From assembly GCA_977020255.1 (NCBI GenBank), contig CDROCS010004219.1:1-64000 (forward strand): a stretch of DNA of 64,000 nt, given 5' to 3'. The notes under the pieces are model-generated. The model worked only from the letters and a program-made list of their open reading frames with translations. It made no database searches and was not told the DNA's origin. The DNA comes from Obrimoposthia wandeli. Its lineage: Eukaryota. Shown one piece after another: positions 10,326 to 63,981 of the stretch (position 1 is its first letter; the number at the start of each line of letters is the position of its first letter). The position numbers and the translations under genes were made by a program.

Positions 10326-10341
10326 ATTGTATAAAATTGCA
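10326..10341 (-). promoter_or_regulatory. Candidate AraC-family binding site upstream of araC
   Basis: ATTGTATAAAATTGCA, twin of 9227-9242 in the same orientation. Confidence 0.5.
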
Positions 10342-10375
10342 GTCATTGTTCTATAAATAGCAGCTATTCACAACT

Positions 10376-10483
10376 CTAAACCTTACCTGCTGGGCCATCA
10401 ATATCAAGTGCAGATTCGGGAATACTGATACGTTGTAATTGAGCAGCGTTATGAAGCAGTGCTTCTACTCCTCTATCATTAAA
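10376..10483 (-). pseudogene. C-terminal remnant of a MocA-like nucleotidyltransferase
   Basis: Manual translation FNDRGVEALLHNAAQLQRISIPESALDIDGPAGKV*, resembling the family ending GDxGAxxLL...DIDTP; in-frame stop upstream and no start. Confidence 0.5.
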
Positions 10484-10568
10484 CTATCTATAGTTAGGTT
10501 AAAGCAATTCAATTAACCTAACTAGATATTGCCTAAGCATTACTACTCAATTTATACATATCATCTGT

Positions 10569-10847
10569 TTACTGCATGGCTTTTATTTTTTCTATGTGCA
10601 AGTAAATGACATTACAGGCACCTGGTTTTATATTAAAAATTGAATGTGAGTTTTCACTATCTGAAATACCCAAATTGAAGGGGATCGATATTGGTAAACT
10701 ATTGCGGTGATTAGGATGAGGATTTACATCTAACTCCACACATTTATCATCATCTAACTCGATAATGATTGATTGCGCGCTAATTTCTGTGCGCTCGCCA
10801 TTCTCATCTACAGAAAATACTTTATATTTCATGATGTCTAATCTCAT
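10569..10847 (-). CDS. Small hypothetical protein
   Basis: 92-aa ORF with protein-like composition; no recognisable motif. Confidence 0.6.
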   Translation of the reverse strand: MRLDIMKYKVFSVDENGERTEISAQSIIIELDDDKCVELDVNPHPNHRNSLPISIPFNLGISDSENSHSIFNIKPGACNVIYLHIEKIKAMQ

Positions 10848-10894
10848 TATTTTTGCTAAGCGGGGCGCTTGATTCCTTGGAAAAATTTTCGGTA

Positions 10895-10919
10895 TTAGTT
10901 AATGCCCATCCAGAAACAG
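10895..10919 (-). repeat. 25-bp dispersed repeat, copy B
   Basis: Minus strand CTGTTTCTGGATGGGCATTAACTAA; 23/25 identical to 25508-25532. Confidence 0.7.
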
Positions 10920-10988
10920 CTAGCTACCATCATCCTAAATACGTAATCTTCTAAGATCTACATAGACAATTCCATTAAACTACTTTGC

Positions 10989-12446
10989 TTAAATGGGAAG
11001 CCAGTGGTCAACTATCTTCAGGAAAGTATTATTGGATTTCAGTTTTTCAACTGCTTTAACTAATGAATCAAGCTCTTTTTGAGTAAGTGAAGATTTTTTT
11101 GAACATTGAAGCCATACAGGAAGTGTCTTAACATTGTATCCTGTAAAGCTGATATCATCTTGTAGTCCTTGTTTGTCTACTTCATAAATTAGAGTTTTTT
11201 CAATACCAACAAAAGCGTCAATTCTGCCTCTTTTTATCATCGCTGGTCCTTGTTTTTGCGTTGGTACTATTTGTTTTTCAACTGATGAATTATTGTACAA
11301 TTCAGGAAAAAAATTGCTCCCGCCATTGGGAAAACCTACCACTTTTATTTGTTTATTATCCAAAAAATCATCATAGTTCTCTATAGAAATACCCTTGCGG
11401 CTAATAACGGTAACATCTAGATCAAACATATAACTGACGAAATGGTAATAATCACTTTCAGAGTTGTTTTTAGTGAATATTGCGCAATCAATACTACCTT
11501 CTCTCAGCTGCTTAACCATACGGGGGTAAGCTGCGTAAGAAGGCTTGCCTGTAAAACCTGTTTCGTTGAGAATTGCTTCAGATTGCTCCCAAAAAACACC
11601 CGTTACTTGATCATCTTTTTTTATCCCCCAAGGTGCAAAACCAATAATGCCAAACACTATATGAGGAGGGAGAGACGCGGTAAGAGAGGGCGTATGCGCT
11701 CTTGTAATACGCTGGATTAAACCTTTATCTTTTACTTTTTTAAGTGCTAAATTAAATTTTGAAATAAAAGGTAGCATATTTAATGATTTAGATACTCCTA
11801 AGTAGTTTGGGTCCTTCTTGAAAGGCACTGGATATAAATAAAACTCATTTCTACGTGCGCTTAATTCTGGGTCACTATTAATTATATTTAAAGCCCCAAC
11901 CATGCCTGGACCGCTAACAATGGCTACATCAATACGATTACGAAGTAGTTTTTTTAAGCGATGAACTGCATTACTGTCTTCCTCTGTTATGAAATTTCTA
12001 TTTTTTCTTTTTTCAAATGCATCACCATATTTGCTACCTCTTTGTATTCCAACACGTTTGTTATTTAAGTCAGCCATTTTTTCAAAAGGAAATATGTTAT
12101 TTTTTGTGCCTAGTAATAATAATTCATCGTAGTAAACAACATCAGAATAATCGAATATCTTTAAGCGCTCTTGAGTTTTTGAAAGCCCAATAATTGATCC
12201 CCGACCAATCGATGCTTCTCTATAGGCTCTATTCCAAGGTAATAATTTAAGCTCTAACGACAAGTCGCTTTCTTTGGATATCGCAGCTAAAATATCAGGA
12301 AGTATGCCCTTAGCTTTGCCGTTTTCAGCGTAAATTTTAGGTGGTTTATATTCATTCCCAAAAACAAGTAACTCGTTTGCTTGGCTATTTGTGGTCACCA
12401 ATATTAAAAGTAATAATGCAATGCTATAGGCTATTTTCATGGTCAA
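10989..12446 (-). CDS. Secreted protein with two tandem family-3 substrate-binding domains
   Basis: Signal peptide; two ~230-aa SBP-like halves (EYKPP..LPWNRA..RIDVAI and GFAPW..YPRMVKQL..RIDAFV). Confidence 0.85.
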   Translation of the reverse strand: MTMKIAYSIALLLLILVTTNSQANELLVFGNEYKPPKIYAENGKAKGILPDILAAISKESDLSLELKLLPWNRAYREASIGRGSIIGLSKTQERLKIFDYSDVVYYDELLLLGTKNNIFPFEKMADLNNKRVGIQRGSKYGDAFEKRKNRNFITEEDSNAVHRLKKLLRNRIDVAIVSGPGMVGALNIINSDPELSARRNEFYLYPVPFKKDPNYLGVSKSLNMLPFISKFNLALKKVKDKGLIQRITRAHTPSLTASLPPHIVFGIIGFAPWGIKKDDQVTGVFWEQSEAILNETGFTGKPSYAAYPRMVKQLREGSIDCAIFTKNNSESDYYHFVSYMFDLDVTVISRKGISIENYDDFLDNKQIKVVGFPNGGSNFFPELYNNSSVEKQIVPTQKQGPAMIKRGRIDAFVGIEKTLIYEVDKQGLQDDISFTGYNVKTLPVWLQCSKKSSLTQKELDSLVKAVEKLKSNNTFLKIVDHWLPI

Positions 12447-13000
12447 ACTCCTTTATATCATTGAGTTTATTGAAATGATTACACTATTCCTTGATGTTTT
12501 GTAGAGCTATTATTCACTGTACTCATGTTTAGTTAGCGATTTTTTGAGAAATCCAGCCAATAGTAAACGTTAATAAGCGCCCTTTATATTCGCTAAACCC
12601 TTAGTAGAAACCTATTTTCGCAAACCCTAGAAACACCACATTTTGATTAATTAGAAAGTCATACTGTTTAAATATATTTTCATATATAGCTAAAAGAGTA
12701 AGCTACTCACCTTCATCGTACAAACGATACCTAGCCATATCTTAGACTTATCTCCCCTGGTATAGGCTAAGAATTTTTTGAGAAAATGATACCAATCTAA
12801 GTTAACAGATAATGAATAAATTTAGTCATTAAACCTTTTGTACTGCTTCGGCCTAGGTCTGATTTATACCTTTGCAAGCCAGTTATATAGAACTAAATAT
12901 AAATGAGCTTATTTTGGTTTACCTTCAACATATCTTGCTTTGAACAACTTGACAATCATGTCCCCTTTTAAAAGAAGGCAATAATATATACAATACCTAT

Positions 13001-13020
13001 TACCTACCACCTAGTAGGTA
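13001..13020. promoter_or_regulatory. Candidate TetR operator
   Basis: Perfect inverted repeat TACCTAC-N6-GTAGGTA, 78 bp upstream of the DsbA-like gene. Confidence 0.6.
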
Positions 13021-13098
13021 GTTTTAATTTAAACGACCCATACTTGGCATAAACAAGCTAAATTAAAGCAATAATATATTTTATAAATAAGGAAAATT

Positions 13099-13800
13099 AT
13101 GAAACACCAACTGTTCTACGTTACAGATACATACTGCTGCTGGTGCTTTGGGTTCAGTGAAACCATGGATAGCATAGCAAAAGAGTATACTGATAAGATT
13201 GATATCAACGTCATCAATGGCGGCATGATTGCAAATGATTTTTCTTTAGAAAAATTTTTTAGCCGCTTTCCCGATCCAATTGGTTTGCATAAACATATCT
13301 CTGCGACATCTGGACAACAATTTGGCTCCCCCTACCTCAGCTTAATAAAGAACTTGAAAGACTCCAATAGAAACTTAAACTCTAGTATCCCAGCTAAAGC
13401 AATCATCGCTTTCAAACAACTTGGTGTTGATGGTCTAGTCGCGGCTAAAGAAATACAAAATGCACACTATCTTGAAGGCATTGACCTACAAAAAATAGAA
13501 TCTTACAAAACCATTGCAAAGAAACTAAATGTTACGTTTGATCAATTCTCAAAGGTTTTTTCTGATTCTAAGACCACCAATGCACTGAATGCAGAGCTAC
13601 AACTAGTAAGAAAGTTACGCATTCAAGGGTTTCCTGCCATATTATTGAAAAACGAAAACGCTAGCTTTAGCGTAATTTCAAATGGCTTTCTTCCTTATGC
13701 TAAGTTAAAAATTGAATTAGATAATGCATTAGCTAAAGTGGAGAACGCTCGAAGCGCTCAAGGAAACACATGTACTTTAGACGCAGCAGAATGTAACTAA
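13099..13800 (+). CDS. DsbA/FrnE-like thioredoxin-fold protein
   Basis: DTYCCWCFGF (CxxC) and IQGFPAILL (cis-Pro loop); RBS AAGGA. Confidence 0.85.
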   Translation: MKHQLFYVTDTYCCWCFGFSETMDSIAKEYTDKIDINVINGGMIANDFSLEKFFSRFPDPIGLHKHISATSGQQFGSPYLSLIKNLKDSNRNLNSSIPAKAIIAFKQLGVDGLVAAKEIQNAHYLEGIDLQKIESYKTIAKKLNVTFDQFSKVFSDSKTTNALNAELQLVRKLRIQGFPAILLKNENASFSVISNGFLPYAKLKIELDNALAKVENARSAQGNTCTLDAAECN

Positions 13801-13823
13801 ATAAAGACAATTTTAGAAGTTAT

Positions 13824-13853
13824 GCCCCTCCATTCACCTAAAATGGAAGGGGC
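13824..13853. terminator. Hairpin between convergent dsbA-like and tetR genes
   Basis: GCCCCTCCATT-N7-AATGGAAGGGGC. Confidence 0.6.
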
Positions 13854-13869
13854 TTTACTATTCAGTTTT

Positions 13870-14430
13870 TTAGCGCGTAAAGTGTTGTTCTAAAATATCA
13901 TCAAAAGCACTAACAAGAGCTTCGTTATCATTAAAAATCCAACTGATCAGGCTCGCTCCCTCAATAGCACACATAAATGACATCGCTATTTTTTGAGGAG
14001 AGTAGGTATTTTCAGTCATTAATGGATCAGAGGCAATTATTCTCACTAGCCATTCAAGCTGAACTTCAAATAATTTACGCGATAATTCTTGCAGCGTAGA
14101 AGGTAAAGTTGCTCGCTCCGCAGCCATAGCACAACAAAGCGGAAGAATCCCCTTATCGTAACTATCAGTGAAAAGCCTTCGATAGCCAAGCAGCCTATCG
14201 CGCACTGTTTTATTTTCTTGTTCAATGGCTCCTAGAGATTGTGAGAATCGCTGTAAGTACTCTGTGATCAATACAATCCCTAAATCTTCTTTCGTCGGGA
14301 AATGATGATGTATGCTAGGTTTTTTTATTCCTACATGCTCAGAAAGATCTGCATAGCTAAATGCTGAATAGCCTCTTGTGCGCATTAATAACTCTGCGTG
14401 TTCAAGCAGTTTCGACCTAGTTTTATTCAT
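13870..14430 (-). CDS. TetR/AcrR-family regulator (NemR/AcuR-like)
   Basis: TRGYSAFSYADLSEHVGIKKPSIHHHFPTKEDL; CPxC-like LPLCCAMAAE region. Confidence 0.93.
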   Translation of the reverse strand: MNKTRSKLLEHAELLMRTRGYSAFSYADLSEHVGIKKPSIHHHFPTKEDLGIVLITEYLQRFSQSLGAIEQENKTVRDRLLGYRRLFTDSYDKGILPLCCAMAAERATLPSTLQELSRKLFEVQLEWLVRIIASDPLMTENTYSPQKIAMSFMCAIEGASLISWIFNDNEALVSAFDDILEQHFTR

Positions 14431-14595
14431 TTATAAACCTTAAATAACTTTCTTTCTCAGATGTTTTGGTGATCTAATTTTGCATTACACTGGATAATAT
14501 AGCCGATCATAACCAGTATAACTGGACTTCTCATCTTTCACTAGATAGCTATTGTGTATAAAAAATTAAGCTTCCTCAATTTTACTTGGACATAA

Positions 14596-14623
14596 ACCGC
14601 CAGCCTCTGAAATAGCTGGCGGT
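14596..14623. terminator. Isolated GC-rich hairpin
   Basis: ACCGCCAGC-N10-GCTGGCGGT; weak U-tract. Confidence 0.4.
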
Positions 14624-14751
14624 CAAATATTTAGCAAGTGACACCACTCTAGCCCTCATTGATCTGTAACACGTTTCATGAGCACGTATGTATAGGAACG
14701 TATTTAAAGTATTATGTTTTGTTGCTATCAACAGACATGGGGTTTGAATAA

Positions 14752-14967
14752 TTGAGTAAACTTATAAGAATACTTGGCAGTATCATAGGGTTATTTTTTA
14801 TATTACTGCCCGCATGGGTATATTTTTTTACCACTTCAAGTGAGGTACTTTGGACGCAGCCGATAATAGGTATCCTATTCCTTTTACATGGCTTTGGCGG
14901 TTGTAGCGTATTATGTAAGAAATTAACAAGCTATAAGAAGTATATAAATGGAGCGAAAAAACGATAG
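14752..14967 (+). CDS. Small two-TM hypothetical membrane protein
   Basis: Two hydrophobic stretches and a basic tail; no family recognised. Confidence 0.45.
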   Translation: MSKLIRILGSIIGLFFILLPAWVYFFTTSSEVLWTQPIIGILFLLHGFGGCSVLCKKLTSYKKYINGAKKR

Positions 14968-15260
14968 GAATCGGCAATCAAACTTCACAGTCAGGTCACC
15001 TTTTCAATATAAAAATAAAGAAACAGCAAACATGTTAGCTGCTGAATACATCAGCCCTACTCCATCTTTAGCGTTCATTTTTAATAGCAACATGACCGAC
15101 CCATTCACACATTTAAATTTCATCGCTCAAATCCAAACCCCTCTTTGCCAGCTGAACAACTGTTTCAATCTTCTTATATACTTATCTAGGAATTTATCCT
15201 ATAAATAATATTACAACCATAAGAATATCAACATGGATGTAATTTCTTTAGCGCAGTGAA

Positions 15261-17564
15261 ATGGTGTATGCAATGGCGAATAATAATAAAACAAATACCG
15301 AGCTGCTAATTGAAATTGAGCAATTACAAGCCGAGCTTTCATCTGTTTATCGCACGACTGAAGTACGCGCGGCGCAACTTTATGATATTGAAGAGCGCTT
15401 TGCTATCGCCATGCGCAGTGCGAGCGACGGCCTTTGGGACTGGAACTTAGAAACCAATGAAGTCTATTACTCAACCCGATGGAAAAGCATGCTTGGCTAT
15501 GAAGAGGATGAACTTGAGCCCACCTTGATGACATGGCAAACGCTGGTTCATCACGAAGAAGTAGCTGGCGTCTTGAAGAAAGTTGAGGATTATTTAAGTG
15601 GTCGAGCAGGCTATTTTGAAGTAGAAATGAGAATGAGCCATAAAGATGGGCATGATGTTTTTGTTCGCTCACGCGCATTTAAAGTGGTGAATGATTTAAC
15701 AGGAACCCCCATACGTTTAATTGGTACGCACGTTGATATTACCTCTGCAAAAAAAGCCGAGCAGTTCGATAAAAGACATACCAAAATCATTGAGATGATA
15801 GCTAAAGGGGATGAAGCTTCTGAGGTGTATGATGAGATCGCTTTTTTGTATGAGGAGCGTCATCCAGGCTTGCGCTGTTCAATGCTTGAGTTAGATGGCA
15901 ATACCTTATGGCATGGAGCCGCACCTAGCCTTCCAACTGAATATAATGAAGCGGTAAATGGTTTAGTTAATGGCCCTAACATTGGCTCTTGCGGCACCTC
16001 CACTTATTCTGGTAAACGCGTATTGGTACAAAATATTGAAACCGATTCAAAATGGGTAGACTTAAAAGAGGTAGCTCTACCCCATGGCATGCGCTGCTGC
16101 TGGTCTGAGCCTATTAAAAGCTCATCAGGTAAAATTCTCGGCGCTTTTGGGATGTATTTTGACTATCCAGCTTTACCTAATGAAGAGCAATCAAACGATC
16201 TTATATCAGCCTCTAGACTCACCGGCATTGTAATGGAGCGCGAGAAAAATCAAAAACGTATTCGCGACTTAGCCTATAAAGATAAACTGACAGGCCTTGC
16301 CAGTCGGGCACATTTTTATCTAAAAGTTGAAGAAATAATAAAAACTTCAACCGCACAAAACCGAAAATTTAGTTTGTTCTATATCGACTTAGATAACTTT
16401 AAAAGCATTAACGATAGCCTAGGGCACGATGTAGGCGATTTACTACTCAAAGAAGTAGCGCTTCGCTTAAAGAGTGCTTGTCGTGAAGTGGATTACATCG
16501 CCCGTCTTAGTGGCGATGAGTTTTGCATTATTGTTCACGATATAAATGATGATTACAGTGTCAGCGATATCGCTCAACGTTGTCTCGACTCAGTATCTAC
16601 CCCTGTAGAATTTGTCGACAGTAAATTTATCCCAGCATGTAGTATTGGCATATCGAACTTCCCTGAACACGCAAATGATGTGCAAACCATCTTAAAAACA
16701 GCCGACACTGCTTTGTACTCAGCAAAAGACTTAGGTAAAGGCTGCTTTGTGTTTTATCAAGAAGAAATGACACGCAAAGCTGAATACCGATTTCAGATGG
16801 AACAATACTTAAGAGAAGCGATAGAAAAACAAGAACTGTCAATCGTTTACCAGCCGAAAATAAACATGATCACGGGCGCTATCGAGGGTGTCGAAGCGTT
16901 ATCGCGCTGGTACCATCCCCAGCTTGGGCAAGTTCCTCCGGTTGAATTTATCCGCATAGCTGAACAAATAGGTATGATTAAGACATTGACTGCATGGGTT
17001 TTAAAAACGGCTTGTCATCAGCTACAACAATGGAAAAACTCAGGTTTTCAATCGATACGGATGGCTGTAAACATCTCTCCTACACATTTTCTGGACAGTG
17101 AGCTGGCACCGCTGGTTAAAAGTATTCTCAATGAAACAGGCATCGTAGCGAGCGAACTTGAGCTCGAAGTGACAGAAGGCGTTGTACAAACCAACATAGA
17201 GAACCTAAATGCTTTTGAGCGAGTAAAGGCGCTGGGAGTTTGGTTATCAATCGATGATTTTGGTACCGGTTATTCCTCTTTGGCCTCACTAAAACACTTC
17301 ACTGTCAACTTTCTAAAGATAGATAAGTATTTTGTAGATGAGCTACTTACTGATAAAAAATCCTATATTTTGATTAAATCTATGATCCAATTAGGCCATA
17401 GCTTAGGCTATAAAATAACGGCGGAAGGTGTTGAAAAACCTGAACAACTCAGCATGTTGAAAGAGTTAGGGTGCGATTCAGCTCAAGGGTACTTCTACAA
17501 AAGACCCTGCGGCCATCAAGGCATATCAGCACTTTTATCTAAAGAACAATTAATGGGTGGATGA
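15261..17564 (+). CDS. Cytoplasmic PAS-GAF-GGDEF-EAL protein
   Basis: PAS3 (GLWDWNLETNEV), GAF (GSCGTS, CWSEPIK), SGDEF variant with REVD I-site, EAL, DDFGTGYSS. Confidence 0.95.
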   Translation: MVYAMANNNKTNTELLIEIEQLQAELSSVYRTTEVRAAQLYDIEERFAIAMRSASDGLWDWNLETNEVYYSTRWKSMLGYEEDELEPTLMTWQTLVHHEEVAGVLKKVEDYLSGRAGYFEVEMRMSHKDGHDVFVRSRAFKVVNDLTGTPIRLIGTHVDITSAKKAEQFDKRHTKIIEMIAKGDEASEVYDEIAFLYEERHPGLRCSMLELDGNTLWHGAAPSLPTEYNEAVNGLVNGPNIGSCGTSTYSGKRVLVQNIETDSKWVDLKEVALPHGMRCCWSEPIKSSSGKILGAFGMYFDYPALPNEEQSNDLISASRLTGIVMEREKNQKRIRDLAYKDKLTGLASRAHFYLKVEEIIKTSTAQNRKFSLFYIDLDNFKSINDSLGHDVGDLLLKEVALRLKSACREVDYIARLSGDEFCIIVHDINDDYSVSDIAQRCLDSVSTPVEFVDSKFIPACSIGISNFPEHANDVQTILKTADTALYSAKDLGKGCFVFYQEEMTRKAEYRFQMEQYLREAIEKQELSIVYQPKINMITGAIEGVEALSRWYHPQLGQVPPVEFIRIAEQIGMIKTLTAWVLKTACHQLQQWKNSGFQSIRMAVNISPTHFLDSELAPLVKSILNETGIVASELELEVTEGVVQTNIENLNAFERVKALGVWLSIDDFGTGYSSLASLKHFTVNFLKIDKYFVDELLTDKKSYILIKSMIQLGHSLGYKITAEGVEKPEQLSMLKELGCDSAQGYFYKRPCGHQGISALLSKEQLMGG

Positions 17565-40367: not shown

Positions 40368-41738
40368 TCACCATAATTTGGCCAAAAGTGGGTCATCCTT
40401 TAAGGCTGGGTTATCTGAGGCCATAAATTTAGCCGTATCATCAAACACATCTTTTATTGATGTTTTAGCTCCAGCATTGAGTAAAAACTCAATAACAGAA
40501 GTGTCTCTACTTAACATGGCGGCATACATCAATGCTGTAGTGCCCTCACCATCTTTTGCGTCCAGATCAACCCCTGCATCAATAATCTGTTTAAGAACCT
40601 CAATTGACTGTCCACCTTTTATCGCATAAGTCAGAGCAGTACCACCCTTGTGGTCTTTCTTAGTTAGATCAGCATCCATTGCAATCAGCCGATTAATGAC
40701 AGGTTTGAAATCATCCCCCCTGAGCAGTGCAGCTAAAAGCGCTGTAGTTCCCTTTTTATTGGCTATTTTTGGCTCGGCTCCTGCATCTAACAGTGTGTCT
40801 ATTATAGCGGGCTCTTTATAAGATAATGCTAAAATGAGTGCAGAGTTACCTGCGTTGTCCACTTTGTTAATATCAAACCCTCTCGACATTAACGCTTCAT
40901 AGCCTTGTGCTTCGCCTTCCCGATTAGCCATTAACATGTGTAGCGCATTTTGACCGCGATCATTGCTGATTTTTAAATCAAAGCCTTTATCTTCTAAAAA
41001 CGCTAACCGTTTTTCTGAAGTTCCATCACCGGCAACACTCAAGAGCACCCCAGAAAAGCCATAATTATCACTTACCTCTGGTTCTTCACTCATTTTGTAA
41101 AATTTCTCGAGCATTTCAACGTTATCATTCTTGGTAAGAGCCCGCATAAATAGATCTCTGCCTTCACCGTCAATATAGCCCGCATCAAAGCCTTTCTTTT
41201 CAAGCAGCTCAAACATTTTCAGGGCGCGTTTATTGTAGGCAAAGGCACCTAAAGGTGTGATTCCGAGCCGGCTCTGTTGATTAAAGTCTAGATTGATCTC
41301 CTCGAAATATTCAACTACATCAGGGCGATATTTTTTGTTCTTTGATAACCAATACTGTGGTGTCTCACCCATATAATCTTTTACTTTGTAGTCAGCCCCA
41401 AACTCTGCAAAAAGCTTTATCAACTCCAAATCGCCATAGCGGGCAGCATAAAGCTCGGCATAAACACCTTTACCCCCCTCTGGACGATACGGCACGCCTT
41501 GCTCTAATAACCAGCGCACAACATCATGCGAAGCATTACCGCGCAATGCATAGTGCAGCCCTTGGCGGCCAATCTTTTGTTTTTCAAGTAGGCCATACCC
41601 TTGGTTGATTTTGGCCTGTACATCTTCAACGCTAGCATCTGTCCAAAACGTCTTGGTAAGGAAGGGGTTTTTAGCATGCGCACTGGTTGCTAGTAGCGTG
41701 GCTACCGCGACGGTAGAAATAAAGGTTACAAGTTTCAT
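40368..41738 (-). CDS. Secreted ankyrin-repeat protein
   Basis: Sec signal ending AHA; repeated G.T.L..A...L...GAD units. Confidence 0.9.
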   Translation of the reverse strand: MKLVTFISTVAVATLLATSAHAKNPFLTKTFWTDASVEDVQAKINQGYGLLEKQKIGRQGLHYALRGNASHDVVRWLLEQGVPYRPEGGKGVYAELYAARYGDLELIKLFAEFGADYKVKDYMGETPQYWLSKNKKYRPDVVEYFEEINLDFNQQSRLGITPLGAFAYNKRALKMFELLEKKGFDAGYIDGEGRDLFMRALTKNDNVEMLEKFYKMSEEPEVSDNYGFSGVLLSVAGDGTSEKRLAFLEDKGFDLKISNDRGQNALHMLMANREGEAQGYEALMSRGFDINKVDNAGNSALILALSYKEPAIIDTLLDAGAEPKIANKKGTTALLAALLRGDDFKPVINRLIAMDADLTKKDHKGGTALTYAIKGGQSIEVLKQIIDAGVDLDAKDGEGTTALMYAAMLSRDTSVIEFLLNAGAKTSIKDVFDDTAKFMASDNPALKDDPLLAKLW

Positions 41739-41753
41739 TTACACAATCCTCTG

Positions 41754-43928
41754 TTAATAGATGTCTTCAAGATAGCGGCCACACTGCCGCAATTCAGTGA
41801 GGCTAAGGCCTATACTGGTACAAATAATATCAATTTCATGGGCCACTGCATGTGCCATTTTGGATGAACCACACACCATGATAGTGGCATCCTGAGATAA
41901 ATTTTTGGCTAGTGTGGCAGTAGCACCACGTAAGCGCTCTTGTACATAAACATGATCACCATGGCGCGAAAAGGCAGTGTGAAGCGCATTCAAACGACCG
42001 TCGTTTTGCCACTCTTTAATGGCATCACTGTAGTAAAAATCATATTCGGGGTGGCGCAATCCTAAAAACAGTTCCATTGATTGATTACGATTGCCACGTA
42101 TCATGCCAGCAAAAGGTGCAATGCCAGTACCTGCGCCAATCATAATGGTAGGCGCATTTCGTGCCGGTCGAAAATAAGGGTTATATTCAACATAAGCATC
42201 TATATTTTGGCCCAATTGCATCCCCAGTAAATGGTTAGAGCACACGCCGCCATCCACCTCAACGACACAAAGCTCAACCATAGCTTCCTTCTTTGAAGAG
42301 GCTAGCGAGTATAAACGTGGTATAGGATCTTGCGGGGGGATAACCCCTAATAAATCTCCAGCTTGAAAAGCTGGTAGGCGCGCTCCTTTTGGTGCCCGAA
42401 AACGCAGTATCGCAGAATGTGCTCCGTCATAACCGATGTAGCTCACTCGCTCGAAAAGCTCTAGTTTTCGAGTACTTGGCTTAGGCGGGGTGTAATCTAG
42501 TCGTAATTTATCCAGCTCAAGTATAGGAGCAAGTGCATGCCCCCATGCAGTGAAAGCTTGCCCAGAGCGTCGGTTAATATCACTCATAGGCAGTAAACTA
42601 TTACGTCCAGATGCGAGTAGCGCTTTATGACAATTACTGGCAAAGGCGCAATACGCTGAGAAAGCTTTATCGCCAAATCCTAGCACCGCAAAACTTTGCC
42701 CACCTTGGTAAGCAACTAGCCTTTGCAAAAACTGCGATGCGCTCGAGGGCGGTGTACCGTTACCATAAGTGGCTGCAAGTAAGATCAACTTTGCCTCATC
42801 TTGCAGCTGATACGTTTTATTCATATCACCCAGATGCACTGCTTTGCCTTCATCACGCAGCTTTTTTGCCAAATGGACTGCGAACCCCCAAGTCGAACCT
42901 GTTTCAGAGCCAACTAAAATCACCACCTGCGCGTTACTGGCCGATACCATACCGCGCGGTTTAGGGTGACTACGACGTAGCCAAACTAAAAGACCTGTTA
43001 TGGTAAAAAAGGGAATACTAAGCGCTACTATACCCGCTATCGCACCCCATACTGAGGCTCCTTGACCGGTATGCAGCAAGGTAAATAAGTCTAATACACG
43101 GCTCATAATAGGCAAGCTTTCATGACTGAGTATTTTGCCAGATTGTCGATCAATGAACGTTAATTTCGCTCCTTGGCGCAACACATAAACATCCCACCAG
43201 TCAGACCAAATAGGAAAACTTAGTTCTGTTAAACCGCGCAGTTTAACCGTATTAAAAATATCCAATTGAACTGCTGGTATCGGCTCAGCCTCCACTAAAG
43301 ACTCCGGATAATGCGTATTCGAATCACTCCCAGAGGGTATAACTGCGTTTGACACAAGTGACATCCAGGTACCAGATAACATGGTTACAAATAACGGAAT
43401 AACCAGTAATCGACCTAACACTGTATGCCATTTATCAAGCCCTCGCCCTTTGACTGGTACTAAAATTCTCGCAAAACCACCGAGACGACGGGCTAACAAA
43501 ATCACCCCTGTTATTAAAAGTAGTAACATTGTCGTCACACCGATCAATGTTATAGGGCGCCCTTTAGGACCAATCGCCAAATTACGATGTAGACTGTTGA
43601 CTAAGTCCATAAACGGTTCAGGTCTGTCTTTACGCGCCAGACGACCATTATGTGGGTTAAAAGGTACTTCTCTTGAGCCTGCTGCATCTGAACCTCTTAA
43701 CAACACGCGTCCAGAATAATCGATACGTATCCGATCAATGTCAAAATAGGGGCTCTTTTTGGCCGACAGTTGCAGCACATCTCCCACTGTCAACTCACCT
43801 AAGTTATGCACATTACGATCAAAGCGCTTAAGTAACGGATCTATCGAAAGAATAGCGCCGGTACCCGCCATAAAAATCAGCAGTAATCCGAGTACTACCC
43901 CCTGCCATCGATGCAATTGACGCCACAT
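41754..43928 (-). CDS. PepSY-TM domain fused to flavodoxin, FAD-binding and NAD(P)H-binding domains
   Basis: TM His motifs LHRW, LHRNL, WHTVLG, LHTG; GSETG, ATYGNG, GFGD; RLYSLAS; GAGTGIAPF; RYLEDIY. Confidence 0.9.
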   Translation of the reverse strand: MWRQLHRWQGVVLGLLLIFMAGTGAILSIDPLLKRFDRNVHNLGELTVGDVLQLSAKKSPYFDIDRIRIDYSGRVLLRGSDAAGSREVPFNPHNGRLARKDRPEPFMDLVNSLHRNLAIGPKGRPITLIGVTTMLLLLITGVILLARRLGGFARILVPVKGRGLDKWHTVLGRLLVIPLFVTMLSGTWMSLVSNAVIPSGSDSNTHYPESLVEAEPIPAVQLDIFNTVKLRGLTELSFPIWSDWWDVYVLRQGAKLTFIDRQSGKILSHESLPIMSRVLDLFTLLHTGQGASVWGAIAGIVALSIPFFTITGLLVWLRRSHPKPRGMVSASNAQVVILVGSETGSTWGFAVHLAKKLRDEGKAVHLGDMNKTYQLQDEAKLILLAATYGNGTPPSSASQFLQRLVAYQGGQSFAVLGFGDKAFSAYCAFASNCHKALLASGRNSLLPMSDINRRSGQAFTAWGHALAPILELDKLRLDYTPPKPSTRKLELFERVSYIGYDGAHSAILRFRAPKGARLPAFQAGDLLGVIPPQDPIPRLYSLASSKKEAMVELCVVEVDGGVCSNHLLGMQLGQNIDAYVEYNPYFRPARNAPTIMIGAGTGIAPFAGMIRGNRNQSMELFLGLRHPEYDFYYSDAIKEWQNDGRLNALHTAFSRHGDHVYVQERLRGATATLAKNLSQDATIMVCGSSKMAHAVAHEIDIICTSIGLSLTELRQCGRYLEDIY

Positions 43929-43934
43929 GTCAGA

Positions 43935-44426
43935 TTAATACTTGTATCTAAGGTAGCGGACATAACCAGTTCCAGGAATCTTCTTCCTTTGGTTTTCACT
44001 CGTCAGATCGACCTCTGCATCTGTTTGTACATTATCAGCATTCTCAACCGAGGTTTCTACGCGCAGCTTATAACCTGCATCCACTAGACGCTTATCTATG
44101 TCTACTTCCATTACTGCACGCTCACCTCCAGGTGTTGAGGCTCCAGTAATAGCATCCACATTTTCGCGCGCACGGTTGTGATAACCAAACCAACGCTTAG
44201 AATCAGGCCACCAAATTTTATCAGGCCCTGATACCCACAGCGTGCGATCAAACTTCCCTTTTGGGTTCACTAAATAAAGATGAAAATACGCCTCAGGCCC
44301 ATTGTATTCATTCAATTGAACCAACACGACAGCTGCATCTGCTCGCAGTGGAGCAGCGAGAGAAATAACAGATGCACCTATGAAAAAAGGGACACGAAGA
44401 CAAGCAAGTAATGATGACGATGACAT
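43935..44426 (-). CDS. DUF2271-family exported protein with flavinylation motif (start moved to ATG 44426, RBS AGGAG)
   Basis: YNGPEAY..YL, TLWVSG, W..W, DAITGAS, LRVETSVE. Confidence 0.85.
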   Translation of the reverse strand: MSSSSLLACLRVPFFIGASVISLAAPLRADAAVVLVQLNEYNGPEAYFHLYLVNPKGKFDRTLWVSGPDKIWWPDSKRWFGYHNRARENVDAITGASTPGGERAVMEVDIDKRLVDAGYKLRVETSVENADNVQTDAEVDLTSENQRKKIPGTGYVRYLRYKY

Positions 44427-44500
44427 TTTAGATCTCCTGAGCGTTTTAAAGTAAAGCACAACTCAGGGCTGTAACAATCCTTAAACAACTGAATACAAAT

Positions 44501-44519
44501 AATAATCTAAAGCATTATC
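44501..44519. promoter_or_regulatory. Fur-box-like site upstream of the DUF2271 operon
   Basis: AATAATCTAAAGCATTATC, 14/19 to GATAATGATAATCATTATC; the AT-rich background weakens this. Confidence 0.4.
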
Positions 44520-44586
44520 TTTTTATTTCAACAACAGTCAAGCGTTAATAAGAACTATTATTACTACGATTATAAACAAAGCCGGA

Positions 44587-44700
44587 TTACATCCTTGATA
44601 AATTACCGGTACGGCCAAAGTCTGCCTGAATCTCATCGGTAATTAACACACTAGCGTGTTCATGTATTAGCTGTCGCTTGCTCTAAAAAACTCACCAACC
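44587..44700 (-). pseudogene. Internal remnant of a class-III PLP aminotransferase
   Basis: FLEQ/RQLIHEHASVLITDEIQADFGRTG (one frameshift), matching the family motif LLIxDEVQTGFGRTG, then a stop. Confidence 0.7.
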
Positions 44701-44939
44701 CATTAATTGCAAAAATCTAGGCACATCAACATCCCTACCAGCTTGGCTCGCTCGGCACTATCTCTAGAATCATTTTTTACCGCTATCAGCTAGAAGGTTG
44801 AGAGTAGGCAAATATGCATACCCACCGGCTAAGCCGTTCATTGTGATGTAAAGGGCATTTCAGGTGTGTAAATATTAGTAGAACTGGGGGAATATAATAT
44901 GACAGAGAGATTACTAAAAATAATAAGAGTTTTAGCAAC

Positions 44940-45235
44940 CTAACCCACTATTAATGCATCAATCAGCCATTTGTGACACTGTGAAGAGTTATTTTTAACA
45001 TGCCAAATAACTGCAAGACTATAACCAGACCAATGAAAGGGTAACTCATTCATCTCAAAGTTTTTAAAGATTGAAGTGATAACGCTTTAGGCCGGGAGGC
45101 AACAATATCTGTCCCTTGAATAAGTGATGCTAACGCAAAGAAGCCTGGAGCACTTGTCACTATTTGACGCGCATGCCCTTGTGTTTGCAATAATTGATCA
45201 ATTTCTGTCTGGTGCTTGTTGCCAAAGGGCATAAT
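44940..45235 (-). pseudogene. LysR-family regulator, C-terminal half only, frameshifted
   Basis: EIDQLLQTQGHARQIVTSAPGF..GTDIVA, frameshift near 45060, then ELPF..AVIWH..HKWLIDAL*; no HTH. Confidence 0.8.
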
Positions 45236-45237
45236 GC

Positions 45238-45753
45238 CGCGTTGCTGCAGGTAAGTTGGTCGAGCACTGGGATCATTATCAACAAGTACCAGCAAAATCT
45301 GCAAACGCTAATACTATGTACGAAGGTCCAGATGCCGATATTTACTCCACCCAAAATACCGCGCAAAACAAACAGCGCGCATTAGCTATTTTAGCGAGCT
45401 TTAACAATCCATCGGACACATCGGCAATTAAAAAATATGTGGCTGACAAATATATACAACATAACCCTTACGTTGCAGATGGAGCACAACCCTTAGTTAG
45501 CTACCTTACTGAATTAGCTGAGAATAAGGTCCGTTTAAAAACAAACATTGCGAAAACTATCGCCATGGGAGATATGGTACTTATACACTCTCGCCAGACA
45601 AATTTAGATATAAAAGATGATTTAGGATATGGCTATATGGATATTTTCCGCCTTAATGATGCGGGTAAAATAGTTGAACACTGGGATATTGAAGAAAAAA
45701 TTAGTGGAGAATCTAACAACAATAATGAAATTTTTGGCTATCCTACTCAGTAA
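45238..45753 (+). pseudogene. 5'-truncated tandem SnoaL/NTF2-like protein
   Basis: Begins at RVAAGKLVEHWD (end of domain 1); second domain intact (YIQHNP..DG, DIFR..GKIVEHWD). Confidence 0.75.
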
Positions 45754-59180: not shown

Positions 59181-60485
59181 ATGAATAAAAATTTAAATGC
59201 TAGTTTTTTAATATTAATACTAGCGATAGCTTTACCTATTGGATCGCTCTCACTGCAATTAGCCACACCAAAATGGCCTGAGTTTTGGCAAGTACGTGCT
59301 TTTTTAGTCACTTATAGCGGCATAGTGACGATGATACTTATGTCATTGACCATTATCCTGTGTGCTAAAAACCGGCATCTAGAAAAGTGGTTATCAGGGT
59401 TAGATCAACAATATCGGTTACATAAATACCTAGGTATCACCACCGTATTTTGTGCGCTCTTACATTGGCTAAGTTTTATGTCTGACGACATTGCAATGGA
59501 ACAAGGTTTCATAGCAGCCACAGAGGAGAAATACCCTTTTTTCAAACTGATAAATTGGATGGGTGATCCTGCGCAGTTTTTAGGTGAATGGGGATTTTAC
59601 CTCAGTGCATTTATTGTTTTTATTGCTTGGGCTAAATATTTTGCGCACCATATCTTTCAACTAGCACATAAACTCTTACCCTATATCTACCTTCTACTCG
59701 TTATACACATGCTCATTTTTTTAGATATAAAGCTATGGTTATCGCCACCTGGCATTGTATTAGCAATAACTACTTTGTTAGCCAGTATCTCAAGCTTATT
59801 GGCAATATTAGGTATCAATGGAAAAAACAACCGCAGCTTAGCCACCTTAAACAAAGTCACTAGTCTTAAAAGTGGAGTGGAGATCACATTGCAACTGGCA
59901 TCAAACACACAAACATACCAAGCAGGACAATTCGCATTTATTCGCTTTGATCAAAAAGAGAATGCGCATCCGTTTAGTCTTGCATCAAAGGTCACGAGCG
60001 AGGGTAAAGTGCGGTTTTTAATTAAAGCCAATGGGGATTACACAAACACATTTGCAAACAACCTAAACCTTGGACAGCAAGTACAATTAGAGGGCCCTTA
60101 TGGCTACTTTGATTTTATTGATGAAGCTAAACATCATGTTTGGATAGCAACCGGTATTGGCATAGCCCCGTTTCTGTCCGCATTAGAAAACATCCCTAAA
60201 AACACACGAATAGATTTATTTTACACATACAGTATCGCTGATGAAATATTACTCTCACGGCTGATGTCACGAGCAAAAAAATCCAATGTAAGATTGCATC
60301 TAATTAATACGAGCACCTCACCACGGTTAACCCCTAATGATATATTGAAAACCATTAAAGACATTTCTATATGCAGTGTTTGGTATTGTGGCTCGCTTAT
60401 TCTGGGAGATCTTTGCGAGAAAGCGCTGCGTAAAGCAGGATTAGCTAGCCATTCATTTCATAGAGAGTTATTCAATTTCAGATAG
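59181..60485 (+). CDS. Ferric-reductase-like membrane oxidoreductase (TM heme, FAD, NAD domains)
   Basis: YRLHKYLG, ALLHW, AHK..IH, HPFSLAS, EGPYGYF, ATGIGIAPF, YCG, FHRELFNFR. Confidence 0.9.
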   Translation: MNKNLNASFLILILAIALPIGSLSLQLATPKWPEFWQVRAFLVTYSGIVTMILMSLTIILCAKNRHLEKWLSGLDQQYRLHKYLGITTVFCALLHWLSFMSDDIAMEQGFIAATEEKYPFFKLINWMGDPAQFLGEWGFYLSAFIVFIAWAKYFAHHIFQLAHKLLPYIYLLLVIHMLIFLDIKLWLSPPGIVLAITTLLASISSLLAILGINGKNNRSLATLNKVTSLKSGVEITLQLASNTQTYQAGQFAFIRFDQKENAHPFSLASKVTSEGKVRFLIKANGDYTNTFANNLNLGQQVQLEGPYGYFDFIDEAKHHVWIATGIGIAPFLSALENIPKNTRIDLFYTYSIADEILLSRLMSRAKKSNVRLHLINTSTSPRLTPNDILKTIKDISICSVWYCGSLILGDLCEKALRKAGLASHSFHRELFNFR

Positions 60486-60930: not shown

Positions 60931-63900
60931 ATGCCTTTTATAAAATTTAAATTATTTTATACATACTTACACTCGTTATCCTATTTAGCGCTATCGTTTA
61001 AGCATCTTTGTGCTGGGCTAACGGCTAGTCATAAGTTTTTATTTAATGCATTAATCTTACTGACTTTTATTTCAACAACCATCCACGCCCAACAAACGTC
61101 TGATTTACAGCTCACAGCTAAAGAGCGTCAATGGATTCAACAACACAAACAAGTGACTCTCGCCTTTGATGGTTACTTTCCTCCCTATAGTTTTATAAAT
61201 GATCAGCAAAAGTTAGAAGGATTTTCTGTTGATTTATTTGCAATTTTAGCTAAAAAAACAGCGATAAACTTTAGCGTCCACTCCCAAAACAAGTGGGATA
61301 AACTGTATGAAACAGCCAAAGCACATGAAGTAGATATCGTCGCAACCATGGTGAAAAGTGAAGAGCGTTTACAGTGGTTTAACTTCACACAAGCTTACCT
61401 TTTTAAATCGCAAGTCATTATTTCTCGTGAAGATGATACCACCATAAAAAACAAGCCTGATATTAAGAATAAAACAGTGGCTCTGGTAAAAAATTACCAC
61501 TACACACAAAAAATTATCACAGACTACCCATCGCTTACCCCCGTATATTTCGATACGATACTGGATGCACTCAATGCAGTATCCGTTGGCAAAGCCGATG
61601 CAGCTATTACTTTTTTTGGTGCTGGGCATTATTTACGAAATAAGTATTTATTGAGCAATTTAAAATATGCCGCTATTTACGACAGAGATAATGCGAATGA
61701 GCGTATAGCTGTAAGAAACGATTTGCCGCTACTGTCTTCTATACTCAGCAAAGCCTTAGCCTCAATACCACAAGCGCAATTGCAGAAGCTTAGAGCCAAG
61801 TGGTTACCTGTTGATGATCTGCAAGAACTGGCTGAAATTGAATTAACACCAAAAGAGAAAAAATGGATAAAAGCGCATCCTGATATTCGTTTAGGAATAG
61901 ATCCTGAATACGCACCTTTTGAGTACATTGAGCAAAAACAATACAAAGGCATGGCTTCTGATTATGTAAAACTGCTCAATCAACGATTAAAGCTCAATAT
62001 GAAAGTAAGCCAAGATTTGAGCTGGAACGAGGTAATTAATCATGTGAAAAATAAAAAAATTGATGTATTACCTGTGGTGAGCATTACTCCACAGCGTAGT
62101 AAATTTTTATCTTTTACACAGCCCTACCTTAATTTTTACCGCGTTATTGTAACGCGAACTGACATGCCATTTATCAGCAGCCTCGATGATTTAGGTAAAA
62201 AAAATGTCGCGGCGCAAAAAAACACTTCTCACTATGAGTTCTTAATACAAAACTCGACCATACAGCCACAACTTTATGCCGATCTACAGCAATCATTACT
62301 GGCTGTATCTAGTGGCAAAGCAGATGCGTATATAGGCAATGTTGCCGCTGTTACTTATTGGATTAGAAAACTCAATTTAACCAATTTAAAAATTGCCGCT
62401 CCCGCATCCACTCAAATACAGAGCCTGCGTATTGCTATTCGTGATGATTGGCCTGAGCTCACTTCTATTTTACAAAAAGGGCTCGACAGCATTAGCTCTC
62501 GCCAAAGAAAGGTAATTTCTGAGAAATGGCTATCAATAAATTACGAACCAAGCATTAATTATCAAATTATTTGGCAAATTGCTGGTCTCGCATTTTTTTT
62601 AGTGTGTGCCATCATCATATGGAATGTAGCGCTTAAGCGAAAAGTTAAACTGCGCACCTCGCAACTCACCTACAGCTCTAATTACGATAAGCTAACTGAC
62701 TTACCCAATAGATTGCTTATTTTAGATCACTTGAAGCAAAAAATTGCTGAAGCACAGACTAATGATTACCAGATTGCTGTGGTATCTATCGATATTAACG
62801 ACTTTAAAATGATCAATAATTTACATGGTCATCAAACTGGCGATTACATTTTAAATGTCTTTGCACGCCGCCTAAAAGAGTCTTTGCGTGATCACCAACA
62901 AATTGGCCGTGTCAGTGGTAATCAGTTTTTAATGATTCAGACCCATATTAGAGACTCTATTCAATCTGCGAGTGTAGCTGAGCAAATTATAAACTGCTCC
63001 GTAAAACCTTTTACACCCGACAAAAACCAAATATTACTTAATGTGAGCTTGGGAATATCTTTGTATCCCGATAATGGCAGTGCAGCCGAGCTGTTATTAA
63101 AGCACGCTGATGCGGCCACCCTACACGCAAAAAAACTGCTCGATGGCGGCTATATTTATTATACAGAGCGCTTGAATAAAGACATGTCTCGTAAATTGAT
63201 GATTGAAAAACAGCTGCTAACAGCGATAGAAAGTAATGAACTAGCAGTGCATTTCCAACCTAAACTAGATCCCAACACAGAAAAAGCAGTCAGTTTTGAA
63301 GCACTTATTCGCTGGAATAATAAAGAGCTAGGTGCCGTTTCACCTGCCGAATTCATACCGATTGCCGAGCAGCATGAAATAATCAACCAAATTGGTTTGT
63401 TTGTAATAAACCAATCACTGTTAGCATTACAACAGTGGCAACTAAAATATGGGGTTGATTTTTCTATCGCGGTAAACCTCTCCCCGGTGCAATTTCATGA
63501 TGATGATTTATTACCAAATATAGAGTTACTATTAAATAAATATCAACTCAAGCACAGTACTATTGAGTTTGAGATTACAGAAGGCGTATTGCTTTCTAAA
63601 TTTTCAGGTATAGAGGATAAATTAAGAAAACTGGAAGATTTGGGAGTATCTCTCGCAATGGATGATTTTGGTACGGGTTATTCTTCTTTGAGCTATTTAC
63701 GTAAATATAGGTTTGATACTTTAAAGATAGATCAGGAGTTTATTTCAGAACTCCCTCACTCTAAAGCGGATAAAAAGTTGGTTTCAGCCATTATTGTCAT
63801 GGCACACGAGCTAGATATGAAAGTGGTCGCTGAGGGGGTAGAAACTAAGGAACAACACGCTTTTCTTATTGAGCATAAATGTGATTTTGTGCAAGGCTGG

Positions 63901-63981
63901 CTGTTTAGTAAAGCGATGAATGCAACAGATGTAAATGATTATTTAGATCAGCAGTTCCTTGAATCAAAACCTGCTCTATAG
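60931..63981 (+). CDS. Tandem SBP sensor, TM, degenerate GGDEF, EAL phosphodiesterase
   Basis: Two BvgS-like periplasmic SBP domains; SGNQF in place of GGDEF; EAL, EFEITE, DDFGTGYSS, AEGVE intact. Confidence 0.93.
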   Translation: MPFIKFKLFYTYLHSLSYLALSFKHLCAGLTASHKFLFNALILLTFISTTIHAQQTSDLQLTAKERQWIQQHKQVTLAFDGYFPPYSFINDQQKLEGFSVDLFAILAKKTAINFSVHSQNKWDKLYETAKAHEVDIVATMVKSEERLQWFNFTQAYLFKSQVIISREDDTTIKNKPDIKNKTVALVKNYHYTQKIITDYPSLTPVYFDTILDALNAVSVGKADAAITFFGAGHYLRNKYLLSNLKYAAIYDRDNANERIAVRNDLPLLSSILSKALASIPQAQLQKLRAKWLPVDDLQELAEIELTPKEKKWIKAHPDIRLGIDPEYAPFEYIEQKQYKGMASDYVKLLNQRLKLNMKVSQDLSWNEVINHVKNKKIDVLPVVSITPQRSKFLSFTQPYLNFYRVIVTRTDMPFISSLDDLGKKNVAAQKNTSHYEFLIQNSTIQPQLYADLQQSLLAVSSGKADAYIGNVAAVTYWIRKLNLTNLKIAAPASTQIQSLRIAIRDDWPELTSILQKGLDSISSRQRKVISEKWLSINYEPSINYQIIWQIAGLAFFLVCAIIIWNVALKRKVKLRTSQLTYSSNYDKLTDLPNRLLILDHLKQKIAEAQTNDYQIAVVSIDINDFKMINNLHGHQTGDYILNVFARRLKESLRDHQQIGRVSGNQFLMIQTHIRDSIQSASVAEQIINCSVKPFTPDKNQILLNVSLGISLYPDNGSAAELLLKHADAATLHAKKLLDGGYIYYTERLNKDMSRKLMIEKQLLTAIESNELAVHFQPKLDPNTEKAVSFEALIRWNNKELGAVSPAEFIPIAEQHEIINQIGLFVINQSLLALQQWQLKYGVDFSIAVNLSPVQFHDDDLLPNIELLLNKYQLKHSTIEFEITEGVLLSKFSGIEDKLRKLEDLGVSLAMDDFGTGYSSLSYLRKYRFDTLKIDQEFISELPHSKADKKLVSAIIVMAHELDMKVVAEGVETKEQHAFLIEHKCDFVQGWLFSKAMNATDVNDYLDQQFLESKPAL

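Follow-up and report, generated by a model that had tools for sequence, protein, structure and literature searches.

The 64-kb window analyzed here (positions 1 to 64,000 of contig CDROCS010004219.1 from the Obrimoposthia wandeli assembly GCA_977020255.1) contains three co-oriented genes on the minus strand, which encode a DUF2271 protein, a membrane flavocytochrome and an exported ankyrin-repeat protein, in this order. The DUF2271 gene (43935-44426, 163 aa) is identified by a match to Pfam PF10029 and by a conserved start and ribosome-binding site. The second gene (41754-43928, 724 aa) encodes a reductase that combines PepSY_TM, flavodoxin, flavin adenine dinucleotide (FAD) and NAD(P)H (reduced nicotinamide adenine dinucleotide, with or without phosphate) domains, as indicated by Pfam, NCBIfam, an alignment and an AlphaFold model, and the third (40368-41738, 456 aa) encodes a signal-peptide-bearing protein of approximately 13 ankyrin repeats, recognized from Ank_2 matches, a structural model and synteny. 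A promoter with Fur-like boxes (44490-44565, same strand), delineated by a promoter scan, Fur scoring and conservation in eight loci, lies in front of the three genes. Gaps of 6 bp (43929-43934) between the DUF2271 and reductase genes and of 15 bp (41739-41753) between the reductase and ankyrin genes agree with the gap lengths given in the first-pass annotation of this DNA. The longest DUF2271 open reading frame (ORF; 43935-44459, 174 aa) begins with GTG; the true start is most likely the ATG at 44426, which in an alignment of the eight orthologous loci is preceded by the conserved block CTCAGGAGATCTAAA and stands behind a GGAGA site kept in all eight. The ankyrin gene is preceded by an AGAGGA ribosome-binding site. 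The reductase gene starts 6 bp past the DUF2271 stop codon and has no clear Shine-Dalgarno sequence, suggesting translational coupling to DUF2271.

One clade of these operons invariably carries the ankyrin gene in third position. A synteny survey, in which one genome per species was scanned, yielded 80 loci encoding a relative of the reductase (denoted below by L numbers). The DUF2271 gene is located directly upstream of the reductase gene in 79 of the 80, the exception being a contig end, and an ankyrin ortholog is located directly downstream in 14, with none within 8 kb in the other 66. In the reductase tree, which was rooted on the non-ankyrin clade and in which the ankyrin-linked rows are 13 survey loci and the window (L008 was left out because its reductase is frameshifted), these rows form a single clade (Shimodaira-Hasegawa-like approximate likelihood ratio test 100, then 100/100) that includes all 14 of them, with no ankyrin-linked row among the 65 outside. 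Six contigs beyond the survey were looked up by exact protein. Five of these assemblies show the same DUF2271-reductase-ankyrin order: Motiliproteus coralliicola (L081), a Pseudomonadales metagenome-assembled genome (MAG; L082/83), L085 with two tandem ankyrin genes followed by apbE, L086 with a DUF4198 gene in front and apbE behind, and L087 with a FecCD importer alongside; the sixth, L084, is cut at a contig end and uninformative. Thus, conservation of the ankyrin gene beside DUF2271 and PepSY, on which the first-pass annotation had made its proposal depend, is found throughout the clade as well as in these additional assemblies, approximately 20 ankyrin-linked loci in all, and no ankyrin ortholog was observed in any other setting. 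A word search with the ankyrin protein gave approximately 38 clusters of full-length orthologs with 39-82% identity, separated by a big score gap from generic ankyrins. Compared with the proteins of the window, the identity of the ankyrin (82% down to 27%) decreases in parallel with that of the reductase (77% down to 38%), which indicates that the ankyrin gene has long travelled with the operon.

The layout of the non-ankyrin loci is different. The most common one includes a divergent response regulator and histidine kinase, followed by PepSY_2, DUF2271, the reductase and ApbE, often with VIT1 or a P-type ATPase. The ankyrin loci contain neither PepSY_2, nor the histidine kinase-response regulator pair, nor VIT1; most of the non-ankyrin loci have both PepSY_2 (58 loci) and the two-component pair. 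In the non-ankyrin loci of L013-L080, which represent the main clade of the reductase family, at approximately 4000-13000 in each, the regulator is of the OmpR type, PepSY_2 is a small secreted protein and the P-type ATPase has approximately 630 aa. The L085 locus (3803-17384) carries the tandem ankyrin duplication, ApbE and a multicopper oxidase and then an iron cluster made up of DUF1513, two imelysin-like Peptidase_M75 genes, a di-heme oxidoreductase, bacterioferritin and Bfd.

The first-pass annotation had remarked that no apbE was in view, and indeed no ApbE homolog was detected by tblastn in the 64-kb window. Among the alphaproteobacterial loci of the ankyrin clade, apbE follows the ankyrin gene in 12 of 13 (L002-L004, L007, L009-L012, L051, L065, L085 and L086); only in L087 is this position occupied by a convergent FecCD importer instead. 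The loci from which apbE is absent (L001, L005, L006, L008, L081, L082/83 and the window) all belong to Gammaproteobacteria, as do the three other apbE-less loci of the survey, which come from marine members of this class; a Klebsiella plasmid copy of the non-ankyrin module is also devoid of the gene. This distribution suggests that the ancestral order was DUF2271-reductase-ankyrin-ApbE and, in the simplest reading, that the operonic apbE disappeared following transfer, the recipients having an ApbE of their own beforehand. The missing apbE is then a secondary, lineage-specific loss and not an anomaly, which implies that DUF2271 is flavinylated in trans. The loss of the ancestral operonic gene in the gammaproteobacterial members thus makes this part of the first-pass proposal likely.

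The gene tree supports an old transfer from Alphaproteobacteria to Gammaproteobacteria, in line with the horizontal acquisition suggested previously. At the base of the ankyrin clade, all lineages that branch off in succession are alphaproteobacterial (Devosiaceae, Rhodobacterales), and the gammaproteobacterial copies fall, along with three copies from Alphaproteobacteria, into a crown group (97/98 support). The unconstrained tree requires three changes for entry into Gammaproteobacteria, and a single gammaproteobacterial clade is not rejected by the approximately unbiased test (p 0.20). The nearest relative of the window is an Oceanospirillales MAG (77%); a dimethylglycine-dehydrogenase-like, chromosomal protein of the window is closest to those of Marinomonas, Cobetia, Vibrio and Psychromonas. 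Base composition is weak support for transfer. The operon is richer in GC than its flanks, as claimed in the first-pass annotation, but the rise is to 43-46%, smaller than the 42-55% given there, against 39.1 ± 2.7% for the other genes of the window. The excess is mostly at codon positions 1 and 2, the GC content of third codon positions (GC3) being 35-39% in the operon vs 34.2 ± 3.9% in the other genes. We therefore rejected composition as evidence of a recent transfer, GC3 being within approximately one standard deviation of the window genes; a GC3 nearly that of the host indicates that the transfer is old. No ankyrin ortholog was found in the PLSDB plasmids, and the non-ankyrin module occurs on 98 of them, 71 conjugative, including plasmids of Klebsiella, Citrobacter and Raoultella. 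The genes that flank the operon are unrelated in the window and many other loci, and accordingly the operon, with its three or four genes, has the character of an autonomous cassette.

The membrane component is a predicted flavocytochrome. Its match to PepSY_TM (PF03929) scores 108.9 bits (cut-off 28.8; E 5e-31) and spans profile positions 2-295 of 295, and both Flavodoxin_1 (E 1.5e-14) and NAD_binding_1 (E 5e-12) are above their cut-offs. The resulting domain map consists of the four PepSY_TM helices with two periplasmic PepSY-like inserts (residues 1-320), a flavodoxin domain (333-470) and a ferredoxin reductase (FNR)-like FAD/NADPH region (approximately 490-724); NCBIfam relates the C-terminal half to CysJ. 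In an alignment of 15 homologs, down to 37% identity, His6, His114, His168 and His286 are invariant, and the flavodoxin and NADPH-binding glycine motifs, the FSR motif and the C-terminal Tyr are kept as well. The AlphaFold model (predicted local distance difference test score, pLDDT, 82) has both the N-terminus and the C-terminus inside, four long transmembrane helices with the four invariant histidines at their ends, and two alpha/beta inserts in the periplasm; the flavodoxin and FNR-like domains are modelled on the cytoplasmic side. Both the four transmembrane His motifs and the flavodoxin-FAD-NAD(P)H chain of the first-pass annotation are thus recovered, the FAD domain with a reservation given below.

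The flavin modules resemble those of the diflavin reductases. In a comparison of the whole-protein profile with PDB, the reductase modules of nitric oxide synthase (NOS), CysJ and cytochrome P450 reductase (CPR) were matched in two stretches (E down to 5e-55). The best chain alignment skips approximately 145 target residues (1070-1215), the FAD/NADPH part of the reductase comprises only approximately 235 residues, and Pfam gives no match to PF00667, the connecting domain; given the skipped residues, the CPR-type connecting domain is missing. The protein would therefore work like a diflavin reductase, yet is not a typical member of this group. For the profile of the first 330 residues, FoxB (7ABW) is the sole significant match in PDB (E 1e-4), aligned at the first and the last of the histidines. 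A fold search with the whole reductase model retrieved only diflavin reductases, FoxB not being among the matches. FoxB binds two hemes via conserved His pairs (2024 follow-up of Meheust et al., 2021). The domain order, the four histidines, the FSR motif and the C-terminal Tyr fit the chain from NADPH through FAD, flavin mononucleotide (FMN) and heme to a periplasmic FMN that was envisaged in the first-pass annotation; this reading of the sequence as an electron wire appears fair, but it is not new, the model having been published already.

The DUF2271 protein (PF10029, 94.6 bits, cut-off 27.3; E 5e-27) has a Sec signal peptide ending ADA|A and contains the flavinylation motif DAITGAS(T) that had been noted at the outset; [ST]GAS is present in all 79 DUF2271 partner genes of the related loci (79/79). 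The protein is accordingly predicted to be a periplasmic carrier of covalently bound FMN. By analogy with NqrC and RnfG, the FMN-bearing residue is presumably the last Ser or Thr of the motif, which here is the Ser of TGAS. The Thr that the first-pass annotation had singled out for mutation would thus be the wrong residue.

The third protein matches Ank_2 with 141 bits (E 2e-41) and gives five to thirteen ankyrin-repeat matches in Pfam. Its N-terminus, modelled as disordered, is a Sec-type signal ending AHA|K, and signal peptides are present in all orthologs, so that the protein is indeed an exported ankyrin-repeat protein, as proposed from the sequence initially. In the model (pLDDT 90.5), residues 29-455 form a continuous solenoid of approximately 13 repeats with 26 paired helices, for which only the generic solenoids of AnkB, AnkR and DARPins are retrieved as PDB fold matches (E down to 3e-21). 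Conservation among 22 orthologs is confined to the repeat-consensus positions and three other elements, namely NP[FL][LM]..[FW]W at the mature N-terminus, D.FM.A, and a C-terminal D.F.DTA...DN.AL; there is no invariant or nearly invariant His, Cys or Tyr in these orthologs. An ordinary solenoid of this length lacking such residues most likely has a docking role, as far as conservation and the model indicate, and a periplasmic docking or gating role fits the protein best.

Upstream of the operon, the promoter scan identified a -35 box TTGACT (44541-44536) separated by 16 nt from a -10 box GATAAT (44519-44514), a 10/12 match. A Fur-like box with 14 of 19 matching positions (44501-44519) overlaps the -10 box, and a second one (13/19, 44544-44562) is located at the -35 box. 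In the upstream alignment of the eight orthologous loci, the block TAATnATTCTCATTA-TTGACA-...-GATAATG-...-ATTATTATCATT is conserved, so that the -35 box, the -10 box and the flanking arrays of AT-hexamers are kept while other intergenic DNA is unalignable; Fur-like boxes of 15-16/19 are found in L004, L005, L081 and L082. The 14/19 box reported in the first-pass annotation is thus present and lies within a conserved promoter block, but taken alone it is no more than expected by chance; it gains weight through its conservation in the orthologous promoters, and Fur control of the operon is a reasonable, though indirect, suggestion. The wider family points in the same direction, with PepSY-like clusters repressed by Fur in Shewanella and Caulobacter (Meheust et al., 2021, eLife 10:e66878, PMC8238504). 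Iron-related genes adjoin the operon in several loci: FecCD importers in L009 and L087, DUF4198 in L086, and an imelysin/bacterioferritin (Bfr) cluster in L085. Because of the published family context, the conserved Fur-like promoter and these neighbors, iron is the best-supported acceptor of the wire. In the alphaproteobacterial ankyrin-type operons L002, L003 and L009, a different shared block, CTTGACAAAA followed by an AT-rich stretch, is located approximately 150-200 bp before the DUF2271 start.

Taken together, these data lead us to favor, with modest confidence, the explanation that the three genes form one iron-regulated operon for a self-contained electron wire of the inner membrane with an ankyrin docking scaffold, from which apbE was lost after transfer. 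NADPH would reduce FAD in the C-terminal FNR-like domain, and the electrons would pass to FMN in the fused flavodoxin domain and then to two b-type hemes held by the four invariant histidines of the PepSY_TM helices, to end on the FMN covalently bound to the Ser of TGAS in periplasmic DUF2271. The final acceptor of the wire would be an oxidant in the periplasm, most probably Fe(III), either free or chelated, with Cu(II) as a further possibility. The ankyrin protein would most likely serve as a docking scaffold on the PepSY lobes that the reductase exposes to the periplasm, keeping DUF2271 or a substrate-presenting protein in place there. The sub-family probably originated, with the order DUF2271-reductase-ankyrin-ApbE, among marine Alphaproteobacteria, from which Oceanospirillales-like Gammaproteobacteria received it; in the latter, the operonic apbE would have been lost and DUF2271 would be flavinylated by an ApbE encoded elsewhere. 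The sequences themselves show how the genes are ordered, which domains and motifs they encode, their synteny and phylogeny, and the conservation of the promoter; we infer the cofactor loading, the direction and acceptor of electron flow, the Fur control and the ankyrin contact. A more specific form of this explanation, which we regard as tentative, is that the ankyrin protein is an obligatory subunit of the periplasmic redox chain, a docking platform that couples flavinylated DUF2271 on the membrane flavocytochrome to specific protein-bound substrates, such as loaded siderophore-binding proteins.

Several observations weigh against the wire with its ankyrin scaffold. The linkage of the ankyrin gene is a single evolutionary gain, which is strong evidence of a functional link and is silent on mechanism, and none of the residues conserved in the 22 ankyrin orthologs points to a specific ligand. 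In the reductase, the match to FAD_binding_6 (E 1e-3, 19.6 bits) falls under the cut-off of 21.1 and, given also the missing connecting domain, the inter-flavin geometry may differ from that of CysJ and CPR. With respect to regulation, the window holds six sites of at least 14/19 vs 3.9 ± 2.2 expected, which is the chance level for a Fur box alone; at this frequency, we rejected the box as stand-alone evidence. Many loci have no metal genes nearby and there is no constant neighbor, and some of the neighbors that do occur are copper genes, namely a cupredoxin in L002, CopA, CopB and CusRS in L084, and a multicopper oxidase in L085. Finally, the operon is broken in L008, L082/83 and L007 and hence appears to be dispensable, although these breaks could be either decay or assembly error. 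The breaks consist of three reductase frameshifts accompanied by truncated DUF2271 and ankyrin ORFs in L008 (Aliamphritea spongicola JCM 16668, 7507-11561), a reductase split into two or three ORFs in L082/L083 (5797-7985), and one frameshift in L007 (2155-4343).

The copper genes that adjoin the operon in three loci make a broader metal-reductase role possible, and they also bear on the view that the wire exists but serves a purpose other than iron assimilation, for instance Cu(II) reduction, NOX-like production of superoxide or peroxide, or the feeding of a periplasmic repair or respiratory enzyme recruited by the ankyrin protein. L081 is located beside a periplasmic molybdoenzyme cluster, and the wire, with its NADPH, flavin, two hemes and outward face, is laid out like the NOX, FRE and STEAP enzymes, which also counts for such a function. 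We nevertheless consider this view unlikely, given that the promoter with Fur-like boxes is conserved, that iron importers, DUF4198 or the Bfr cluster are found beside the operon in four loci, and that the published iron link of the wider family stands while no neighbor is constant.

With about the same low probability, the ankyrin protein could be a regulatory gate on the periplasmic lobes of the reductase or on DUF2271 that holds electron flow in check in the absence of a substrate or partner, and thus replaces PepSY_2 and the two-component system. The two layouts are mutually exclusive, as described above, which speaks for such a gate; however, this exclusivity represents one evolutionary event and hence a single observation, nothing marks PepSY_2 as regulatory, and docking and gating are indistinguishable from sequence.

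It is still less probable that the ankyrin protein is no structural part of the wire and instead serves the PepSY_TM cytochrome in maturation or heme handling. Such a function is suggested by bacterial ankyrins that are co-operonic with heme enzymes and needed for their activity, as in the heme loading of catalase, where Cj1386 binds heme via Tyr57, and the reductase is predicted to hold two hemes. Against this stand the lack of an invariant or nearly invariant potential ligand in the ankyrin orthologs, the presumably much smaller size of the catalase-linked ankyrins, the description of Cj1386 as cytoplasmic whereas the ankyrin protein here is exported, and the 65 non-ankyrin relatives of the cytochrome that do without such a factor.

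The notion that the operon of the window is a decaying relic, with apbE lost and DUF2271 unflavinylated and inactive, might draw on the frameshifted copies in A. spongicola, the Pseudomonadales MAG and L007 and on the gene fragments just upstream of the operon, but is very improbable given that all three ORFs of the window are intact, that the motif, the histidines, the ribosome-binding sites and the promoter are conserved, and that intact apbE-less versions are found in at least five gammaproteobacterial genomes and on Klebsiella plasmids.

The electron wire with its ankyrin scaffold, which remains our preferred explanation, can be compared with several known systems. The closest are the PepSY-like flavinylation clusters, defined as a PepSY-like gene with a flavinylation component (ApbE, FMN-binding, DUF2271 or DUF3570), of which 3220 have been described, 2833 with DUF2271, 1077 with a fused NAD-binding domain and 167 with VIT1; flavinylation of DUF2271 by its cognate ApbE at the [S/T]GA[S/T] motif has been demonstrated experimentally (Meheust et al., 2021). 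The operon of the window, with DUF2271 6 bp upstream of the PepSY_TM gene, falls within this definition. Shared features are a DUF2271 protein with [S/T]GA[S/T] beside PepSY_TM, a predicted supply of cytosolic NAD(P)H in the subset with the NAD-binding domain, links to iron (VIT1, Fur) and ApbE as the modifying enzyme. In contrast to the described clusters, the ankyrin gene is fixed here, the clade has no VIT1, PepSY_2 or two-component pair, and its gammaproteobacterial members have no apbE in the cluster. An ankyrin gene is mentioned neither in that study nor in its 2024 follow-up, and there is no Ank Pfam accession in approximately 0.4 Mb of the supplement text, a part of the whole in which such an absence is weak. 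A joint literature search for PepSY and bacterial ankyrins returned only unrelated papers on TRPA1 and phage display, with none linking the two. What was already known is thus the DUF2271/PepSY-NAD wire, and what is new is that the periplasmic ankyrin protein is strictly conserved, that DUF2271-reductase-ankyrin-ApbE was probably the ancestral order and that apbE was lost in a particular lineage.

FoxB, FpvG and VciB share with the reductase the four-helix PepSY_TM core, the two His pairs for two hemes and a proposed role in periplasmic iron reduction. However, sequence similarity to FoxB is weak (E 1e-4, at the domain ends only), a flavodoxin/FNR module is not fused to these proteins, and neither DUF2271 nor an ankyrin has been described as their partner. 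CysJ, CPR and the NOS reductase domain, which are the best PDB matches in both sequence and fold, have the same succession of flavodoxin and FNR-like FAD/NADPH domains, the FSR motif and a C-terminal aromatic residue; unlike in these enzymes, the connecting domain is absent here and the module is fused to a membrane cytochrome instead of serving a soluble partner. The eukaryotic and bacterial NOX, FRE and STEAP enzymes and MsrQ-like reductases with an NAD-binding domain similarly conduct electrons from cytosolic NAD(P)H via flavin and two transmembrane b hemes to an outside acceptor, but their membrane fold is unrelated (Ferric_reduct PF01794 vs PepSY_TM PF03929) and they have neither a covalent periplasmic flavoprotein nor an ankyrin. 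A protein of this type (59181-60485, plus strand, 434 aa), with Ferric_reduct PF01794, FAD and NAD-binding domains, is also encoded in the window at a distance of 15 kb; it is a further NAD(P)H-driven transmembrane reductase, unrelated to that of the operon. We also observe a Ferric_reduct-type protein encoded directly before the PepSY_2-DUF2271-reductase-VIT1 genes on a Klebsiella pneumoniae plasmid (L089). Finally, the catalase-linked ankyrins (Pseudomonas aeruginosa AnkB, Campylobacter jejuni Cj1386 and Leptospira ank-katE) are likewise encoded in operons with a heme protein, and AnkB is periplasmic; by their descriptions, they are set apart by a different partner and by the lack of a conserved candidate heme ligand in the protein analyzed here. 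They are also, we presume, far shorter than the 456-aa, 13-repeat protein.

If the proposed mechanism is correct, participation of an ankyrin-repeat protein in extracytosolic electron transfer of bacteria would be shown for the first time, and the operons of this clade would constitute a distinct, mobile sub-type among the PepSY-like systems. PepSY-like flavinylation systems are found in thousands of bacterial genomes, and a large periplasmic ankyrin protein lends itself directly as bait for identifying the contacts of the wire. The apbE-less three-gene version is a natural test of whether a housekeeping ApbE serves a foreign substrate, and, thanks to the fused NADPH module, membrane assays of the system are simple. 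The findings should be useful to the field of extracytosolic flavinylation and involve no surprise of principle.

The rest of the window consists of accessory and regulatory genes, with no housekeeping genes among them. Gene remnants are located just 5' of the operon promoter (44560-45304, minus strand). The first (approximately 45304-44935) is frameshifted and looks like the C-terminal part of a regulator; a LysR-like label for it was not confirmed by Pfam. The second, of approximately 25 residues (approximately 44665-44590), resembles class-III aminotransferases around their active site. Three large GGDEF-EAL signalling proteins are also encoded in the window, at 2374-5994, 15261-17564 and 60931-63981.

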